Virus record (IMG/VR): IMGVR_UViG_3300017469_000123
Location: 1 to 7,421 of that record
Direction: 5' to 3' (one strand)
Length of the DNA stretch: 7,421 nt
Below, in pieces: positions 1 through 6,588 of the stretch. Position 1 is the stretch's first letter, and each line of letters begins with the position of its first letter. The position numbers and the translations under genes are program-made. The notes beneath the pieces were generated by a model that had not been told where the DNA came from, did not search any database, and saw only the letters and a program-made list of their open reading frames with translations.

Positions 1-1724
1 TTTATCTGCTCGAAAAGAGAGTTAGCTTGCATAGCGGAAGACATTGCGTTCTTTAACACCCTAAGAGCTTCAGTATAGTTGTTCATTAAAGCCAAGAAGT
101 ATGCTGATGGTGAACTGGCATTTACCTGTTGAGTTACGAGTGTGTTTACAGTGTTCAAGTAATCTAGTGTTTGTTGGGTCTTCTCAAGCCCTGACAGATA
201 AGTTTGCACCTGGGTTTGGTAGTTTTGTGCAATTTCAAACAGCTGTTTGGCGGAACTTTGCATATCATAGCTCTCGCTCGAACTTAACAACTGCAGAGCT
301 TGCGATATATCGCTTAGAATCGTATCCTTATTCGCTAGAATTGTTTTAATGGAGGACGATGTGTTGTTTTGTGGTGGCGTAAGCAATTGCTGAGCTTCTG
401 CTAACAACTGCATAGCTTGCGATATGTTCTTTGCGTCTTGGATATCACCCTGGACTGACTGCAAATTCATTTGAAGATATTGAGAAGCCCTTTCCAAAAC
501 CTGGTAGTTCTGCTGAAGAACCTGATACACGCTGTTGAAGTATTGAGAAAGAGAAAGGAATGTTTGTGTTGAAGGTGGTCTGGGTAATTGCTGTAAGCCC
601 TCCAAAATCGTAAAACCTTGAATATATGAAGTTAAATTTATGTTAATATCGTTCTGTTGTGCTATTTGCGAAGCTTGTTGTAGATATTGAACAGCCTCAG
701 AATAATTTCCACTTTGTGCTTCTTGTTGTCCTTTTTGTATATCTTCAAGTGTTTGCAGGTAAGCAGTGTATTTAGTATACATTCCCTGGACAGTTTCGGA
801 TAACGAACTTGCCAAACTTGATAACGGTGTATTGTCAGCGTTAACATTCTGCAATTGAATCTGTGCCTGTTTTATAAGGTTTATTGCACTCTGTATTGCA
901 GACGTTGAATTTCTATTCTGTTGTGCAATATTCTGTGCATTAACTAGCAGAGTGACTACACTCAGAAGCTGAGAGCTGACCTGTTCAGACTGTTGGTAAT
1001 CGTTTGCAAGAGATGAAAAACCATTGTAATAACCTGATGCTTCTGTAGCGTACTGTGATGCAGTGGCGAAGAACGATTTTAATGTTTGCAGGTATTGTTG
1101 TAACTCCTGTAATGTTATTTCTCCCTGTGGTGGTTGTGGGAACGCAGGTATCTTAGCTAAGTAAGAAACAGCTGTTGTTACGTCTTCAAGCCTCTTGTCG
1201 CTGATGTTATTTTGTTGTGCTAATTGCAGGGCTTGCTGAAGATACTGATAAGCTTCTGCGAAGTTTGCTTTTTCCAGTTCACTGTTAGCATTATTAATGT
1301 ATTGTCCTATCTGTTGTAGTGCCTGCACTGTCTGTATTTGTTGCTGTATTTGCGTTACGTTGATTACATTCGGGTATTGTTGGGCTATTTGTAGAGCTTG
1401 CTGAAGGTTACTCAAAGCAGTGTTGTAATCATCGTTCTTCAATGCCTCGTTTGCAGAATTGAAAAGCTGAATAACATTGATGTAAGCGAAATAAGGCTGT
1501 AAGTTAATGTTCGGGCTTAGCTTTTGTGCATTCTGCAAATCGGTTAATGCCTGGTTGACGTTACCGTTCTCTGCGTCATTAATTGCTTGTTGGACATATA
1601 TTAACGCTTGGATTTTTTGTGCAGTTTGAGTTAAACCGTTTTGTTCTGCTAATTGCAGGGCTTGTTGGTATTTGTCCTCAGAGAGTAACTGGTTTATCTG
1701 TTGTGTGATAGGATTAGCACTCAT
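1..1724 (-). CDS. Giant Gln-rich TPR-like alpha-helical repeat protein, probable virion/tail protein (3' end outside window)
   Basis: Manual translation from ATG at 1724 gives 574 codons with no stop to the window edge: MSANPITQQINQLLSEDKYQQALQLAEQNGLTQ...NFAEAYQYLQQALQLAQQNN...GNYSEAVQYLQQASQIAQQND...NAMSSAMQANSLFEQI. In-frame TGA upstream at 1737-1739; TATA box 24 bp upstream. Very large helical virion proteins are typical of bicaudaviruses (family knowledge); function is inferred. Confidence 0.9.
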   Translation of the reverse strand, partial: MSANPITQQINQLLSEDKYQQALQLAEQNGLTQTAQKIQALIYVQQAINDAENGNVNQALTDLQNAQKLSPNINLQPYFAYINVIQLFNSANEALKNDDYNTALSNLQQALQIAQQYPNVINVTQIQQQIQTVQALQQIGQYINNANSELEKANFAEAYQYLQQALQLAQQNNISDKRLEDVTTAVSYLAKIPAFPQPPQGEITLQELQQYLQTLKSFFATASQYATEASGYYNGFSSLANDYQQSEQVSSQLLSVVTLLVNAQNIAQQNRNSTSAIQSAINLIKQAQIQLQNVNADNTPLSSLASSLSETVQGMYTKYTAYLQTLEDIQKGQQEAQSGNYSEAVQYLQQASQIAQQNDININLTSYIQGFTILEGLQQLPRPPSTQTFLSLSQYFNSVYQVLQQNYQVLERASQYLQMNLQSVQGDIQDAKNISQAMQLLAEAQQLLTPPQNNTSSSIKTILANKDTILSDISQALQLLSSSESYDMQSSAKQLFEIAQNYQTQVQTYLSGLEKTQQTLDYLNTVNTLVTQQVNASSPSAYFLALMNNYTEALRVLKNAMSSAMQANSLFEQI

Positions 1725-1738
1725 TATATATAACTCTC

Positions 1739-1755
1739 AAACAGCTGTTTAAAAA
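1739..1755 (-). promoter_or_regulatory. Archaeal TATA box (TTTTTAAA, 1755-1748) overlapping palindrome AAACAGCTGTTT (1739-1750); probably a leaderless transcript
   Basis: Minus strand reads AATAACTTTTTAAACAGCTGTTTGAGAGTTATATATAATG. TATA-to-ATG spacing of ~24 nt fits Sulfolobales leaderless mRNAs. Confidence 0.75.
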
Positions 1756-1785
1756 GTTATTAGATTCTCGTCTCCTCCCACTCTG

Positions 1786-2112
1786 CTATCTTTCACGTAA
1801 AAACCAGTAGATAAACGCCAGACCAATGAGCATCGCGAACACTGTAATATCAAAAAACGGGTATGCAATAATGCTGTATAATATTAGCAATACATTGTAT
1901 TGTTGGGAATAATACTGCGGTTGGTTCAGGGTAAATGTAGAATTAGCTATCTGTATCGAATCTTTTGTGCTATTTGTATATATCATTGAAGAGTTAGAGA
2001 TGATGAGAGTCTGTTTACTTATAAGGTTAAAGAACGGGAAAGCTACGAATACTAACATTGTAGCTAACGCAAAAAATACTACTGCTGTAGTTATGGACGG
2101 TTTCAATTGCAT
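1786..2112 (-). CDS. Small 2-TM membrane protein (108 aa), candidate minor virion glycoprotein
   Basis: N- and C-terminal hydrophobic segments flank an S/T/N/Q-rich loop with three N-x-S/T sequons (NSS, NST, NST). SD-like GGTGAT lies just upstream of the ATG (GGTGATTAATCATG). Confidence 0.85.
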   Translation of the reverse strand: MQLKPSITTAVVFFALATMLVFVAFPFFNLISKQTLIISNSSMIYTNSTKDSIQIANSTFTLNQPQYYSQQYNVLLILYSIIAYPFFDITVFAMLIGLAFIYWFLRER

Positions 2113-2114
2113 GA

Positions 2115-2369
2115 TTAATCACCTTCTTCCCTTATTGATGATGCTATAATAAAAATGATAGCTACAACTATGCCTATTCCAAGCCCATACATCCAGTAGT
2201 TTATGTACGGGACAAAACTTGTGTAAGCAGTATGTATATCTGCGGAGACTACATGTGAAATATTGTTCGTAGGCTGAACAGTTTTAGACACTTGAGACTG
2301 TGCAACATTAAAATTATTGAAAATATACACAAGAAGACCGAAAACTATAATGAATATTATCGTAAACAT
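2115..2369 (-). CDS. Small 2-TM membrane protein (84 aa as called; ~105 aa if initiated at ATG 2431 with a -1 shift)
   Basis: Two hydrophobic helices with a loop carrying an N-I-S sequon. The frame stays open upstream to 2435 (GFFSDLATALRSSISFIVIA-M), but the SD-equipped ATG at 2431 is one base out of frame. Confidence 0.8.
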   Translation of the reverse strand: MFTIIFIIVFGLLVYIFNNFNVAQSQVSKTVQPTNNISHVVSADIHTAYTSFVPYINYWMYGLGIGIVVAIIFIIASSIREEGD

Positions 2370-2431
2370 GGCTATAACTATGAACGAAATAGATGAACGT
2401 AACGCTGTTGCTAGATCAGAAAAAAACCCAT

Positions 2432-2797
2432 TTAATCACCCATGTTCAAAAGTTGAGATTCTTCAAAGCCATTCGCCCACTCTTCTAACGTTTGCAATAG
2501 CCCGCGTTTTTTAGCTTCCTTAAGTATTTCTTTCCTAACGGAGTGTGGCACGGGTTCGCCGTCCGGTATACCGTTTTCTTTTATTTTATCTTTGATTAGA
2601 AGGACTAGGTCATGTAACGCTTTCTTTAGGGGTGGGAAGGCGTCAGACCACGCCTCGTCCCCTGCGATTTTTAGCGTTACTTCTGGGTAATTTATTTCAC
2701 CTTTTTCGAATAATAGAAAGTCATGTAGTGCGTCCCTGGCATACTTCTCTGGATGTAAGTCGTCGAACTCAGATTTAACCCAATTTGACCAGTTCAT
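2432..2797 (-). CDS. ATV p131-like four-helix-bundle virion protein (bicaudavirus 'coat'/nucleocapsid family), 121 aa
   Basis: Motif FEKGEINYPEVTLKIAGDEA closely matches the ATV p131 segment as I recall it (FENGQLGYPEVTLKLAGEEA). ATG 2797 is preferred over TTG 2809, which overlaps the operator and lies at or upstream of the expected TSS. Confidence 0.8.
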   Translation of the reverse strand: MNWSNWVKSEFDDLHPEKYARDALHDFLLFEKGEINYPEVTLKIAGDEAWSDAFPPLKKALHDLVLLIKDKIKENGIPDGEPVPHSVRKEILKEAKKRGLLQTLEEWANGFEESQLLNMGD

Positions 2798-2808
2798 TTT
2801 TCCACACA

Positions 2809-2837
2809 AAACATATGTTTGAGTTGTGGTTAAAAAA
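2809..2837 (-). promoter_or_regulatory. TATA box (TTTTTTAA, 2837-2830) followed by palindrome AAACATATGTTT (2809-2820)
   Basis: Read directly; the palindrome lies between TATA and start codon. Confidence 0.75.
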
Positions 2838-2840
2838 TAT

Positions 2841-5096
2841 TTAGATCTTGAAGCCCTGCTTTACCATTTCAAGTATCTTCTTAGCTTTTTCCTCTTCGCC
2901 CTGCGTTAATTTACTAATATTTTGGTTCATCAGCTGTTCTTTCTTTAATTCAGACAGATAGTTGTAATAGTTAACAAGAGCGAACAGTGTACCGAATAGA
3001 TTGATTAATTGTATTCTGTACTTTGGATTCCTTCCAGTTTCCTTTGCAACATTATCTATGAACTTGTCCTTAAGTGTCTCGGGGAACGCTGATAACTCTT
3101 GCCTCGCCTTGTACAAGCAGATTTCATCCTCTTCCGAGCATATCCCTAGTAGTTTAACTATAGTTTTGAACACCTGCATGTCGAGGGTTGAGGGGCTTAT
3201 AGTAGTTTTAACAATTAACGCACCGTACTGATCGTCAAAAGCTTTCTTTGCAAAATTCAAAAGTGATTTTAATTCCTGCAATTGCCCTTCATTTGCTTGG
3301 TTGAGGTCGAAGTCATTTATCCTTAGTATAGCATACTTGCGGTCTGGCGATAACCCATTAACCGACCCGACCAACAACGTGTTATTTTTATCTACAAACA
3401 AGGGTAACGAGAGACCTGCAGACCGTAGCTCTGTAAAAGCGTCAACAAGGTCTTGAAGGTATTTAAGCTTCTGAGGGTCGGCATTCTTAAGGTTCTGTAT
3501 ACTTTCGATCATGCCGTAACTCTTATTCTCGAACAAATTTGTGAATGAGAAGATCAAATAGGCATCCTTGTATAATTGCACCATGGCACTCAGTTCTTTT
3601 TGATACCTCTCGAACTCGTCTGGGCTTAACGGTCTGATGACTCTTAAGTCTAACACTTGATCGGGAGCGAAAGAGTCTAACAGCTGTATAAGATAATTTT
3701 GTCTAAGTTCTGCGAATACATTAGATAAAACGCTCCTGGTAGTCTCTTCTACAACGCTTCCCTGCTTGTACGTAACTTTCTTGCTTGAAGATTTGTATTC
3801 AGATGGGAATTTGGTGACTAACGCCAAGACGGTAGTAGGGAGAACGCTGGCGTTGTTAGTCTCTAACAGTTCTAGTATCCTGTTCCAATTCTTTTGTAAC
3901 TCGTTCCAGACCTTTTCAGCAAACTCTTCACGCTCTTTTCTGCTTAAAGATTCCCCTTGCCTTATGCCGTATCTGTTTAAGTATGGTCTTAGCCAATCTG
4001 GAATGTATAGTGAAAGTTCCATATTGAGCACTTTTTCTAATTCTAATTTATTTTGCTCAATATTACTATTTTCTACCGCATTCTGTTGTTCCTGAGCTTG
4101 AGGAGCGGGGGTCTGTTGAGGAGTACCTTGCTGTTGAGGGGTAGCTTGAGGAGTGGGAACCTGTTGAGGTTGAGGATTACCGAAAACTATTACATCATTT
4201 TTTTCGAGATTGATTACACGTTCGTTTCCTGTGAGATATTGCGAATAGTTTCCTTTCGGTAAAAGTACCGCAGGAGAAGATCCATATGTGCCTATAACCG
4301 CTTCTGCAATAAGATCAATCGGTAACTTTTCAAGGAATTTTTGTAACTCAGGACTCTCAACATTTTCACTAGGTATAAATTCTGCTGGTGGTATGGTAAC
4401 GTTGCCATGATTTTGTTGGTACTGAGATAGCAGGAAATCGGAAATTTCATTTACAATCCCCTTGGGGATGAGTATAATGTGCGGGTATAAGTCCTTCCTG
4501 AAGGAAGTGTGAATCGCATATGCGGTATAGAAATTTTCTCGGAGTGCAGGATTAACGGATTCTAATGTTTGAATTAACGTCTTTACTTTTGCCTCAGCTG
4601 ATTTCGTTTCTTCTTCTGATTTGCTGTTACCAAATGGAACTTTTGGATATAGGTGGATCACATCAAAAACAAAACCTTTACTTGTAACACCTTCTATTAC
4701 ATTAACATTCATAGTCTTCTCATAAAGCGAAAAACCATATGCATCGATTACCTTGCTGACATTACCTAAATTGAGGTGTATAGTCTTTTCTTTATTCTCT
4801 TCGCCATATTTCACTTCTATGTCATCTGGGTTCTTGATGGGATTTCTCCCTTCCGGAGTACTTACTTTAAGTATAAATGGCATATATCCTTGCGAGTTCA
4901 CAAAACTAAATGTTGCCATAGGCTGATAGTTAACTAATGTTAATGATCCGTCAAACTTCTTTGACGCTTCTTTGCCAAATGCAAAATCTCTACTAGATGC
5001 CAAGAACTTAGAAAAAACCTTGACGAGATAGTCATCTAACGGAACGAGCGAAGGTGAAGCATTCGAAGCTGAAGCCAAAGCATTGTTACTACTCAT
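2841..5096 (-). CDS. Hypothetical 751-aa two-domain viral protein (alpha/beta N-half, P/Q/T linker, helical C-half)
   Basis: Long ORF with its own TATA box and SD-like GAGTGATG (5110-5103). No Walker A, MIDAS or nuclease motif recognised. Confidence 0.9.
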   Translation of the reverse strand: MSSNNALASASNASPSLVPLDDYLVKVFSKFLASSRDFAFGKEASKKFDGSLTLVNYQPMATFSFVNSQGYMPFILKVSTPEGRNPIKNPDDIEVKYGEENKEKTIHLNLGNVSKVIDAYGFSLYEKTMNVNVIEGVTSKGFVFDVIHLYPKVPFGNSKSEEETKSAEAKVKTLIQTLESVNPALRENFYTAYAIHTSFRKDLYPHIILIPKGIVNEISDFLLSQYQQNHGNVTIPPAEFIPSENVESPELQKFLEKLPIDLIAEAVIGTYGSSPAVLLPKGNYSQYLTGNERVINLEKNDVIVFGNPQPQQVPTPQATPQQQGTPQQTPAPQAQEQQNAVENSNIEQNKLELEKVLNMELSLYIPDWLRPYLNRYGIRQGESLSRKEREEFAEKVWNELQKNWNRILELLETNNASVLPTTVLALVTKFPSEYKSSSKKVTYKQGSVVEETTRSVLSNVFAELRQNYLIQLLDSFAPDQVLDLRVIRPLSPDEFERYQKELSAMVQLYKDAYLIFSFTNLFENKSYGMIESIQNLKNADPQKLKYLQDLVDAFTELRSAGLSLPLFVDKNNTLLVGSVNGLSPDRKYAILRINDFDLNQANEGQLQELKSLLNFAKKAFDDQYGALIVKTTISPSTLDMQVFKTIVKLLGICSEEDEICLYKARQELSAFPETLKDKFIDNVAKETGRNPKYRIQLINLFGTLFALVNYYNYLSELKKEQLMNQNISKLTQGEEEKAKKILEMVKQGFKI
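4083..4175. repeat. Low-complexity degenerate repeats encoding PQPQQVPTPQATPQQQGTPQQTPAPQAQEQQ
   Basis: ctgttgagg at 4113, 4131 and 4161; 27-nt direct repeat 4095-4121 vs 4143-4169 (23/27 identical). Confidence 0.8.
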
Positions 5097-5200: not shown

Positions 5201-6037
5201 TTAAATTATGTGGAGACCGAATATTACTGCTAACAACATCATCCCCACTATACCGAGCACGAAGTATAACATTATCCTGTTCATTGATTGCACACGCTTA
5301 CTCTCATTCTGCAACTTCAATAACTTCACTAAATTTGCATTCATCTCCTTAACCGTCGTGGGTATCGTGCTTAATATCTCCAACTCTTGCGATAGTCGAC
5401 GGTTAAGCAACAATTTAGGGTCAACAGCGATAGAAAGTTTTGTGGAAGGAGAGAGCGTTATAGCACCGGTAATCATCTTTTTGACCTTAGCCAACTGTGC
5501 TAGTAAGTCTGGTTCCGCTGTATCATACTCAGACACAGGTATCGATGTTTCTAACGTCTCTAATCTTATCGCATATGGCATTGTGTTGTTTTTCCTTATT
5601 GTGATCAACAACGGTCTATGCATCTTCCCGTATTGTATCATCCCGACCATGGATTCCGAGGTGACCGGGACAATTAGCTCTTCGCCTGTAACTGGGTCAT
5701 GGACTGTGTACAACGACGGCGATAATTTTTCGCCTACGTATAGTTGAGCAGACCTAGTAGATATATCAACGTTGACAACTACAACGTCACTATTCTTAGA
5801 GCGACGGATTTGCCTTATTAGCCCATTTCTTATGGGGTCTTTCATATACGACCTTCTGAACGTTACGTATACAACAATAAATACTACAAATAGTATACCT
5901 AGAGCGATAAAAATGTAAACATATGGCGGAGATAATAGCATTCGAAATAACGAGAAAACTGTAACTTGTTGAGCTTGTGTGTGTGGGGCTACAGTGTTTG
6001 TCAAACTTATGTTTGAAGACGGTGTTTTCAGTGCCAT
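5201..6037 (-). CDS. Membrane protein with N- and C-terminal TM helices and a pre-C-terminal coiled coil (278 aa)
   Basis: TM1 YVYIFIALGILFVVFIVVYVTF; TM2 IMLYFVLGIVGMMLLAVIFGL. Start moved from GTG 6097 to ATG 6037 because TTTTAAAA (6066-6059) lies ~22 nt upstream of it. Confidence 0.85.
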   Translation of the reverse strand: MALKTPSSNISLTNTVAPHTQAQQVTVFSLFRMLLSPPYVYIFIALGILFVVFIVVYVTFRRSYMKDPIRNGLIRQIRRSKNSDVVVVNVDISTRSAQLYVGEKLSPSLYTVHDPVTGEELIVPVTSESMVGMIQYGKMHRPLLITIRKNNTMPYAIRLETLETSIPVSEYDTAEPDLLAQLAKVKKMITGAITLSPSTKLSIAVDPKLLLNRRLSQELEILSTIPTTVKEMNANLVKLLKLQNESKRVQSMNRIMLYFVLGIVGMMLLAVIFGLHII

Positions 6038-6087
6038 GTTAATATCTTGGCAGAAGGGTTTTAAAAGAAGAAGGAAGCGAAGTCGCG

Positions 6088-6094
6088 AAAAAAA
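6088..6094 (-). terminator. Putative oligo-U terminator of the capsid gene
   Basis: T7 tract ~20 nt after the capsid stop, followed by a pyrimidine-rich stretch; typical of Sulfolobales terminators. Confidence 0.5.
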
Positions 6095-6114
6095 CACGTG
6101 CTTGACTTAGAGTT

Positions 6115-6588
6115 TTAACCAGTCTTGAATTTCTCCATTATTATGGATATTATACCTGCCGCGATGAGTACTATCCCTGTCACACCTAACAGCACGTACA
6201 GCGTCGGGAAGAAGCTGAAGAACGATACCATACCGTTTACGAGTGGGTGGGTCAAGTTATATGCCAACGTTCCTGGTGACGGATTGCTTATTGCTGAGGC
6301 AGTAGCTGTGGCGAAGATAGACAGAATGAGACCAGATAGTCCTATTATTACACCGACGATTAGGAGGGCTATTGCTATCGTCGGGATATCAAACCCATTG
6401 GTTCCGAACGTTACTCTGACTAATGACCCTGCTACTCCTGGTTCATGAATTCTAGTCGCTTTCTTTATTTTTGGTATATGAACACTATTTGCCTTTGGTG
6501 TACGAACGTTAATTACCTTGAACATTTTTGCTTTTTTACCACCTGCTCCTACTGATTTCACTGACGGAACGACTACCGAAACCGACAT
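6115..6588 (-). CDS. Major capsid protein of spindle-shaped virus type (hydrophobic two-helix hairpin, SMV1-like), 157 aa
   Basis: Basic N-terminal extension (11 K/R and 1 E in the first 50 aa), then two long hydrophobic helices (IPTIAIALLIVGVIIGLSGLILSIFA; FFPTLYVLLGVTGIVLIAAGIISII) joined by a loop with an N-L-T sequon. This matches the established architecture of bicaudavirus/fusellovirus MCPs. Confidence 0.8.
   Translation of the reverse strand: MSVSVVVPSVKSVGAGGKKAKMFKVINVRTPKANSVHIPKIKKATRIHEPGVAGSLVRVTFGTNGFDIPTIAIALLIVGVIIGLSGLILSIFATATASAISNPSPGTLAYNLTHPLVNGMVSFFSFFPTLYVLLGVTGIVLIAAGIISIIMEKFKTG

Follow-up and report, generated by a model that had tools for sequence, protein, structure and literature searches.

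A small gene of the Sulfolobus monocaudaviruses (SMV1 and relatives), gp07, predicted to encode a two-helix membrane protein, very probably requires a shift of the reading frame by -1 on a run of seven T just after its start codon. About 50 distinct related viral sequences retain this break unchanged, which suggests a deliberate expression control rather than an error. The window analyzed here, a 7,421-nt IMG/VR fragment, derives from the virion-gene block of an SMV1-like virus: as judged by megablast, it is 87-88% identical over 90% of its length to SMV1 and SMV1a, and 80-87% identical to SMV3 and SMV4. All genes of the block run on the minus strand: the MCP gp03 (6115-6588), gp04, gp05 (2841-5096), gp06, the two small membrane proteins gp07 and gp08, and the start of the giant Q-rich gp09. 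A 2025 paper identifies gp03 as the MCP and lists gp05, gp06 and gp09 among the abundant virion proteins, without mention of gp07 (PMC12199143).

The gp06/gp07 junction and its relatives

On the minus strand, gp06 ends in GGT GAT TAA, and ATG GGT TTT TTT CTG ATC TAG follows with no spacer, reading MGFFLI*, while the 84-aa ORF that is usually annotated lies in the -1 frame. The features of the junction are:

2432-2797 (minus): gp06, a P131/RIP-family virion protein gene starting at ATG 2797 (an ORF finder lists TTG 2809); Pfam PF22238 RIP_P131-like, E 1.6e-11; phrog_10676, E 1e-47; orthologue of SMV1 CDF81333 / SMV1a gp06. Its last codons supply the Shine-Dalgarno (SD) sequence of the next gene.
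2435-2440 (minus): SD-like GGTGAT, 3 nt upstream of the ATG, with only the TAA stop (2434-2432) between; the same GGTGATTAA..ATG junction precedes gp08 at 2112. A role as 5' stimulator of a -1 shift is inferred.
2429-2431 (minus): start codon of gp07 in the zero frame.
2420-2429 (minus): shift site G_GGT_TTT_TTT, with overlapping heptamers G_GGU_UUU and U_UUU_UUU in zero-frame phase; the T7 run is 2420-2426.
2418-2426 (minus): T7CT, a match to the Sulfolobus-virus terminator motif TTTTTYT, 5 nt after the gp06 stop codon; a probable intrinsic terminator or attenuator overlapping the shift site, its function inferred.
2411-2413 (minus): zero-frame stop TAG, ending the 6-aa product MGFFLI of ribosomes that do not shift.
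2370-2419 (minus): N-terminal extension of gp07 read in the -1 frame, (S)DLATALRSSISFIVIA, upstream of the annotated Met.
2115-2369 (minus): the 84-aa ORF as usually annotated (SMV1a gp07), corresponding to the C-terminal 84 residues of the 105-aa product; stop TAA at 2117-2115.
1786-2112 (minus): gp08, the next small two-helix membrane protein gene (phrog_21133, E 1e-64), whose ATG is coupled to the gp07 stop through GGTGATTAATCATG.

Translation of the -1 frame from 2429 gives GFFSDLATALRSS..., continuous with the 84-aa ORF. This frame is open back to GGG (2429), reading GFFSDLATALRSSISFIVIAM..., is closed two codons further up by a TGA, and holds no ATG, GTG or TTG before Met-2369. ATG 2431 and ATG 2369 are 62 nt apart, and no GGTGA-like motif precedes the latter. 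The sequence-only reading had described this arrangement correctly in every element, including the coordinates, although it did not state that the feature lies on the minus strand.

To evaluate whether the break is conserved, we read the orthologous site in SMV1, SMV1a, SMV3 and SMV4, in SMV2 (72% identical in protein), in 11 IMG/VR loci and in 53 metagenome loci, the last found with peptide patterns, one of which lies far from the site. The census covers 67 sequences, 52 of them unique over 370 nt. Of these, 49 carry [A/G]TG GGT TTT TTT CTG A with the conserved ORF in the -1 frame; two (metagenome loci L034 and L064) carry T7 followed by CCTTGA, a 2-nt insertion that puts the ORF in the +1 frame; and one (L052, of the same lineage as L072) reads ATG GGT TTT TTC TCT GAC and is in frame. 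All 51 unique sequences with an uninterrupted run have exactly T7, none has T8 or a bare T6, and a direct search of IMG/VR with a T8 pattern returned no hit. The 16-nt string ATGGGTTTTTTTCTGA, T7 included, occurs at the orthologous place in SMV1, SMV1a, SMV2 (with GTG), SMV3 and SMV4 and in about 60 metagenomic contigs, far more than expected by chance. The start codon is ATG in 51 of the 52 unique sequences and GTG, still a start codon, in SMV2, where the same change turns AAT into CGT in the ORF frame. The zero-frame stop is not strictly conserved, as four unique relatives run on to a 17-aa zero-frame peptide, and the peptide itself is therefore unlikely to be functional.

A T7 conserved together with a broken frame in orthologues had been named beforehand as the observation that would support recoding, and this is what the relatives show. 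The proposal of a -1 frameshift or slippage immediately after the start codon is thus supported. The alternatives that the sequence-only reading had called equally possible, a homopolymer sequencing error or a recent 1-bp deletion, are rejected, and phase variation, which it had also raised, is not supported. Homopolymers are error-prone and hypermutable, and one SMV3 record has an N in the run; however, T7 is identical in isolates sequenced a decade apart and in contigs from many independent metagenomes and platforms, no length polymorphism was found, and the ORF is intact at 104-105 codons in every unique relative whose contig spans it and is under purifying selection, which also argues against a pseudogene. 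Logan contigs from three metatranscriptome runs and one DNA run of hot springs, placed on positions 1600-3400, list no indel at 2420-2426, but the listed contigs end at the variable gp06/gp07 junction, none bridges the run by 31 nt or more, and contigs drop minor variants.

Ordinary initiation in the -1 frame, at the GTG inside GGTGAT or at a non-canonical codon, is very unlikely. The GTG inside GGTGAT, which the SMV1 GenBank record uses as its start (108 aa), is in frame in SMV1, SMV4 and six other unique sequences, and gene callers pick it or a TTG. A GGTG core is present in all 52 unique relatives, but its distance to the start codon takes every value from 5 to 9 nt, so that the phase is not conserved; in 41 of the 49 sequences, the window among them, the GTG is out of frame or cut off by a stop, no canonical start exists in the ORF frame, and the frame opens only at TTA AAT GGG. 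Moreover, the GTG is itself the SD and has no SD of its own, and the residues it would add (VIKD, VTKY, LRN...) are not conserved.

Coding signal upstream of Met-2369

To determine whether the stretch upstream of Met-2369 evolves as coding sequence, we built a FastTree tree of 47 sequences from the downstream part of the gene only. On this tree, Fitch counts for the 48 nt between the run and Met-2369 are 62, 32 and 5 changes at codon positions 3, 1 and 2 of the -1 frame, respectively (binomial p 2.4e-9 for the excess at position 3). Replacements are conservative (L/I, S/A, S/T and I/L/V), and G1, F2, F3, D5, L6, A9 and R11 are invariant in 19 diverse sequences. An antisense ORF, 2317-2514 (plus), shares its third positions with the sense frame and is open across the region, which makes the periodicity alone ambiguous. 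We reject this ORF as the explanation, since the 32 changes fall on its second codon positions, its residues change radically (N/I/K/S, I/R/K/M), and its ends are not conserved.

The strongest single result comes from a word-index protein search, which returned two proteins that begin MGFF by standard decoding. The first (P0020, locus L071) is 67-68% identical, reads ATG GGC TTC TTT GAA GAT with no T-run and no internal Met, follows the same kind of SD, and has the gp05 orthologue as its upstream gene. The second (P0005, locus L072) is the form in which the run is T6-C. The ATG is therefore the start codon, and the protein begins M-G-F-F-(S/E)-D-L...R, exactly as a -1 shift on T7, or a U8 mRNA, would give. 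Both in-frame lineages lack a full gp06, but two T7 lineages lack it too, and a link between an intact gp06 and the frame break is suggestive only.

The site itself also appears to be under selection. On the same tree, the 16 nt ATGGGTTTTTTTCTGA show a single change, the ATG to GTG in SMV2; the four positions inside this stretch that are silent in the ORF frame show none, against about 15 expected, whereas neighboring third positions changed 2-9 times, 3.9 on average in the adjacent extension (P about 2e-7). TTC is the commoner Phe codon in this virus (52 vs 39), so codon bias does not make the run, and the in-frame orthologue L071 uses other codons (GGC TTC TTT). A tract this mutable would not stay at exactly seven through that much divergence unless T8, T6 and interrupted forms were selected against.

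These observations make it unlikely that no recoding occurs and that the real protein is the 84-aa product from Met-2369, with MGFFLI* as a short coupling or leader ORF, T7 only a terminator, and the upstream conservation due to other constraints. In favor of that view, Met-2369 is conserved in all relatives but L071, so that an 84-aa product may also be made, and T7CT has an independent rationale as a terminator. Against it, Met-2369 has no SD, two lineages are in frame from the upstream ATG, a terminator would work as well with T8, which is never seen, and an 84-aa form would start directly inside the hydrophobic helix.

Possible ribosomal and transcriptional routes to the -1 frame

We propose that translation starts at ATG 2431, which directly abuts the stop codon of the abundant virion-protein gene gp06, and that after Met-Gly-Phe-Phe the ribosome moves to the -1 frame on G_GGU_UUU_UUU, where tandem or P-site slippage of tRNA-Gly/tRNA-Phe would re-pair perfectly, to give the 105-aa product MGFFSDLATALR... 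We estimate a probability of roughly 0.85 that some recoding at T7 is required, and of only 0.45 that it is ribosomal. The anatomy of the site, its conservation, the coding selection on the trans-frame N-terminus and the natural in-frame orthologues are established by the sequence comparisons, whereas the production of the trans-frame polypeptide from an unedited mRNA, and hence the slipping of the ribosome rather than RNA polymerase, as well as the efficiency and the purpose of the shift, are inferred. The role as a low-copy minor virion protein put forward by the sequence-only reading likewise remains inference.

In support of a ribosomal shift, G_GGU_UUU is listed among the most efficient -1 heptamers, for eukaryote-type ribosomes (PMC5009743), and Sulfolobus ribosomes perform -1 frameshifting at about 10% in vitro on A_AAA_AAT (PMC1616953). 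The phase of the heptamers is not independent evidence, however, as it follows automatically from the loss of one T in ATG GGT TTT TTT TCT. No conserved downstream stem-loop or pseudoknot was found, either by folding the single sequence (z 0.46) or by folding the alignment (-5.98 kcal/mol, with a compensatory change at only 1 of 16 pairs). The only candidate stimulator is the initiation SD:anti-SD helix, 5-12 nt upstream of the heptamers, which resembles the dnaX arrangement, although a stimulating role is inferred; a GGTG(A/G) core is always present, but being also the initiation SD, its presence proves nothing about stimulation. A rare-codon pause at CTG was rejected, since CTG is the joint-rarest Leu codon but is not rare (23 of 236).

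Alternatively, and only slightly less probable in our view, host RNA polymerase could stutter on the seven template A's, a weak rU:dA hybrid at 75-80 °C at a terminator-like pause site, and add one U in a fraction of read-through transcripts, whose standard translation would give the same protein, MGFFSDL.... The site is a pure homopolymer whose length, not only its codons, is frozen, and the invariant CT after T7 fits the terminator motif TTTTTYT (PMC9608457) as well as any ribosomal context; T-stretches ending at C are archaeal termination sites (PMC7237163). The motif occurs at only three loci on the coding strand of the window: this one, one in gp05, and a T7 21 nt after the MCP stop. In the SMV1 genome, sense-strand runs of T7 or longer occur only 3 times inside CDS, compared with 9 on the antisense strand and 11 in intergenic DNA, several of the latter just after virion genes, including T7 runs after gp03 and gp04. 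The polymerase is therefore expected to pause here, and T7CT probably also terminates many gp06 transcripts. The variant L034/L064, which keeps T7 but needs a +1 shift, that is, one U fewer, is easier to explain if run-length heterogeneity arises in the RNA, because slippage yields both longer and shorter runs; yet this is a young variant, 98% identical to a normal relative, and may simply be defective. Against transcriptional slippage, a run of seven is shorter than the roughly 9-bp hybrid and shorter than all well-documented cellular-RNAP slippage sites (A9/T9), for which runs of about 9 give efficient slippage in bacteria (PMC1088944, PMC5009743), and no case is known for archaeal RNAP. This threshold is known for bacteria only, and the efficiency depends on the organism and may extend to shorter runs (PMC1088944), so that the shorter run lowers the idea but does not exclude it.

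A terminator role explains why a T-run is kept, but not why it is T7 rather than the in-frame T8, and the broken frame must itself be selected. The most economical reading is a fixed attenuator: the shift being obligatory, ribosomes that do not slip would stop after 6 codons, which would keep gp07 far below gp06 and uncouple a small hydrophobic protein from the strong transcription and translation of gp06. An unlikely but not excluded variant is that T7CT is a dual-use element, an intrinsic terminator at which the polymerases that read through have, as a mechanical consequence of pausing on the weak U:A hybrid at 80 °C, inserted one U. Only read-through transcripts would then encode gp07, and termination efficiency and recoding would be physically coupled, setting the gp06:gp07 ratio in one 9-nt element; this would be the first programmed transcriptional slippage by an archaeal RNA polymerase and the first terminator-coupled recoding signal.

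The predicted protein and related recoding systems

The 105-aa product has two hydrophobic stretches, at about residues 15-38 and 84-97, and is predicted by AlphaFold2 to fold as a helical hairpin (H2-47, H57-103; pLDDT 72.5), in which the extension forms one helix with the first hydrophobic stretch. The model has no PDB match, the protein belongs to no Pfam family, no similarity to gp08 or to the MCP gp03 was detected, and tblastn at E 10 found no homologue outside SMV-like viruses; the ESM Atlas gives only a sub-threshold VP1-like lead at 0.75. A role as a membrane or minor virion protein is inferred. The protein matches phrog_22665, a family of unknown function (E 9.4e-49), but the 84-position profile covers only residues 21-104, since the family is built from the truncated annotation. 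Databases carry either the 84-aa form (SMV1a, SMV2-4, phrog_22665, ESM Atlas) or the GTG-started 108-aa form (SMV1), and both are probably wrong; a shift at T7 would correct the annotation of this gene in every deposited SMV genome, in PHROGs and in the ESM Atlas.

The closest known system is the α-L-fucosidase gene fucA1 of Sulfolobus solfataricus, from the same host clade and with the same translation machinery, in which a -1 shift on a homopolymer-based heptamer (A_AAA_AAT) is required for any functional product (PMC1616953). fucA1 shifts in mid-gene between two long ORFs, has a putative stem-loop and rare codons nearby, and was shown by MS and mutagenesis; in gp07 the shift would come at codons 2-4, 6-12 nt after the start codon, without detected structure, in a virus and with a 6-aa zero-frame product, and the evidence is comparative only. 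In E. coli dnaX, an SD:anti-SD helix about 10 nt 5' of a homopolymeric heptamer stimulates -1 slippage, whereas Thermus thermophilus dnaX reaches the same outcome in a thermophile by transcriptional slippage at A9 (PMC5009743). In dnaX the SD is internal, a 3' hairpin also acts, and both products are functional in a set ratio; here the SD is the initiation SD itself, its spacing varies, no hairpin was found, and the zero-frame product is a throw-away hexapeptide. The tail-assembly-chaperone frameshifts of tailed phages and haloarchaeal tailed viruses (HVTV-1, HCTV-1/2/5) are likewise conserved -1 shifts in a viral structural gene block, and are the only frameshifts so far proposed for archaeal viruses (PMC8211752); they make a C-terminally extended second protein in a fixed ratio, in Caudoviricetes of Euryarchaeota, while the gp07 site lies at the N-terminus, is obligatory, and occurs in a spindle-shaped crenarchaeal virus with no relation to tail chaperones. 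The Ebola virus GP editing site (7 A) and potyvirus P3N-PIPO (GA6) use runs of 6-7 identical bases, at which one extra base in a minority of transcripts is needed to make a membrane protein whose over-expression is harmful, and PIPO was long taken for ribosomal frameshifting until RNA was deep-sequenced; those sites rely on viral RNA-dependent RNA polymerases on RNA templates, whereas here the multi-subunit DNA-dependent RNAP of the host would have to slip. Finally, T7CT resembles archaeal oligo-T intrinsic terminators (TTTTTYT in Sulfolobus virus SSV1) in lying on the sense strand a few nt after the stop of an abundantly expressed gene, like the T7 after the MCP gene, but a terminator does not need a broken frame, and here the motif lies inside the first codons of the next gene and coincides with the frame break.

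Recoding in Archaea is documented for one cellular gene, fucA1, and predicted for a few haloarchaeal tailed viruses (PMC8211752), and among the papers searched none links monocaudaviruses with a frameshift in this gene. SMV1/SMV1a is a cultured model with a genetic host, a strand-specific RNA-seq time course of SMV1a-infected S. islandicus REY15A (BioProject PRJNA1170361, named in PMC12199143), DNA reads (PRJNA1169678) and virion proteomics (PMC4886783, PMC9018610). A frame shift conserved across a whole clade of crenarchaeal spindle-shaped viruses would be the first in Sulfolobales viruses, and of an unusual design: it would be obligatory, lie at codons 2-4 next to the initiation SD, have no detected RNA structure, and overlap a terminator motif.

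Variation in gp06 and its putative promoter

We first considered the gene preceding gp07. The features of this region are:
2432-2797, gp06, the gene for the abundant P131/RIP-like virion protein
2798-2841, minus strand, segment containing a putative TATA box right after the gp05 stop

Comparison with related contigs (L032/L069/L070, L011-L013/L022/L025/L027, L052/L072 and L071), together with loose ends among the aligned contigs of hot-spring runs, shows that gp06 is dispensable or variable in nature: in one form it is precisely deleted, with its promoter fused to the gp07 ATG; another is a 50-aa form in which window ~2441-2697 is replaced by a GC-rich hairpin element; a third is a 27-aa C-terminal remnant; and in L071 the gene is absent altogether. 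The sequence TTTTTTAACC, located right after the gp05 stop, looks like the TATA box of a gp06 promoter, and the same element directly precedes gp07 in the gp06-less contigs L032 and L071.

T-runs at gp07 and elsewhere

Two slightly different contigs, L034 (positions 400-470) and L064 (positions 790-860), keep ATG GGT TTT TTT but have CCTTGA in place of CTGA, such that the ORF is in the +1 frame and the zero frame reads MGFFP*. In gp07 they are 98% identical to a normal T7/-1 relative (L031), and they may represent either a young defective variant or evidence that the run supports shifts in both directions.

Two further T7 runs were found on coding strands:
window 6088-6094, minus strand, a second T7 on the coding strand, 21 nt after the stop of the MCP gene gp03
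SMV1 genome 33216-33222, sense strand, T7CT, 64 nt into CDS 33152-33823

The first of these is probably the terminator of gp03. The GTG-6097 start assigned by ORF finding to ORF 5201-6097 runs through this T7 and is probably spurious. The SMV1 orthologue is 279 aa in length and starts at the ATG near 6040. The second is one of only two other sense-strand T7 runs inside an SMV1 CDS, and it too is T7CT. The CDS in which it sits overlaps the preceding transporter-like CDS by 14 nt, and the run could reflect a mis-called start downstream of a terminator, or constitute a second candidate site for recoding.

Putative CRISPR spacers matching gp07 and neighbouring genes

The region of interest is:
window 2340-2377, stretch matched by metatranscriptome pieces (also near 1683 and 2869)

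In two metatranscriptome runs, X16 and X20, the pieces that match 2340-2377 are flanked on both sides by GCTAATCTACTATAGAATTGAAA(G), which looks like a Sulfolobales CRISPR repeat. Based on this observation, hosts in these springs seem to carry, and transcribe, spacers against gp07 and neighbouring genes.
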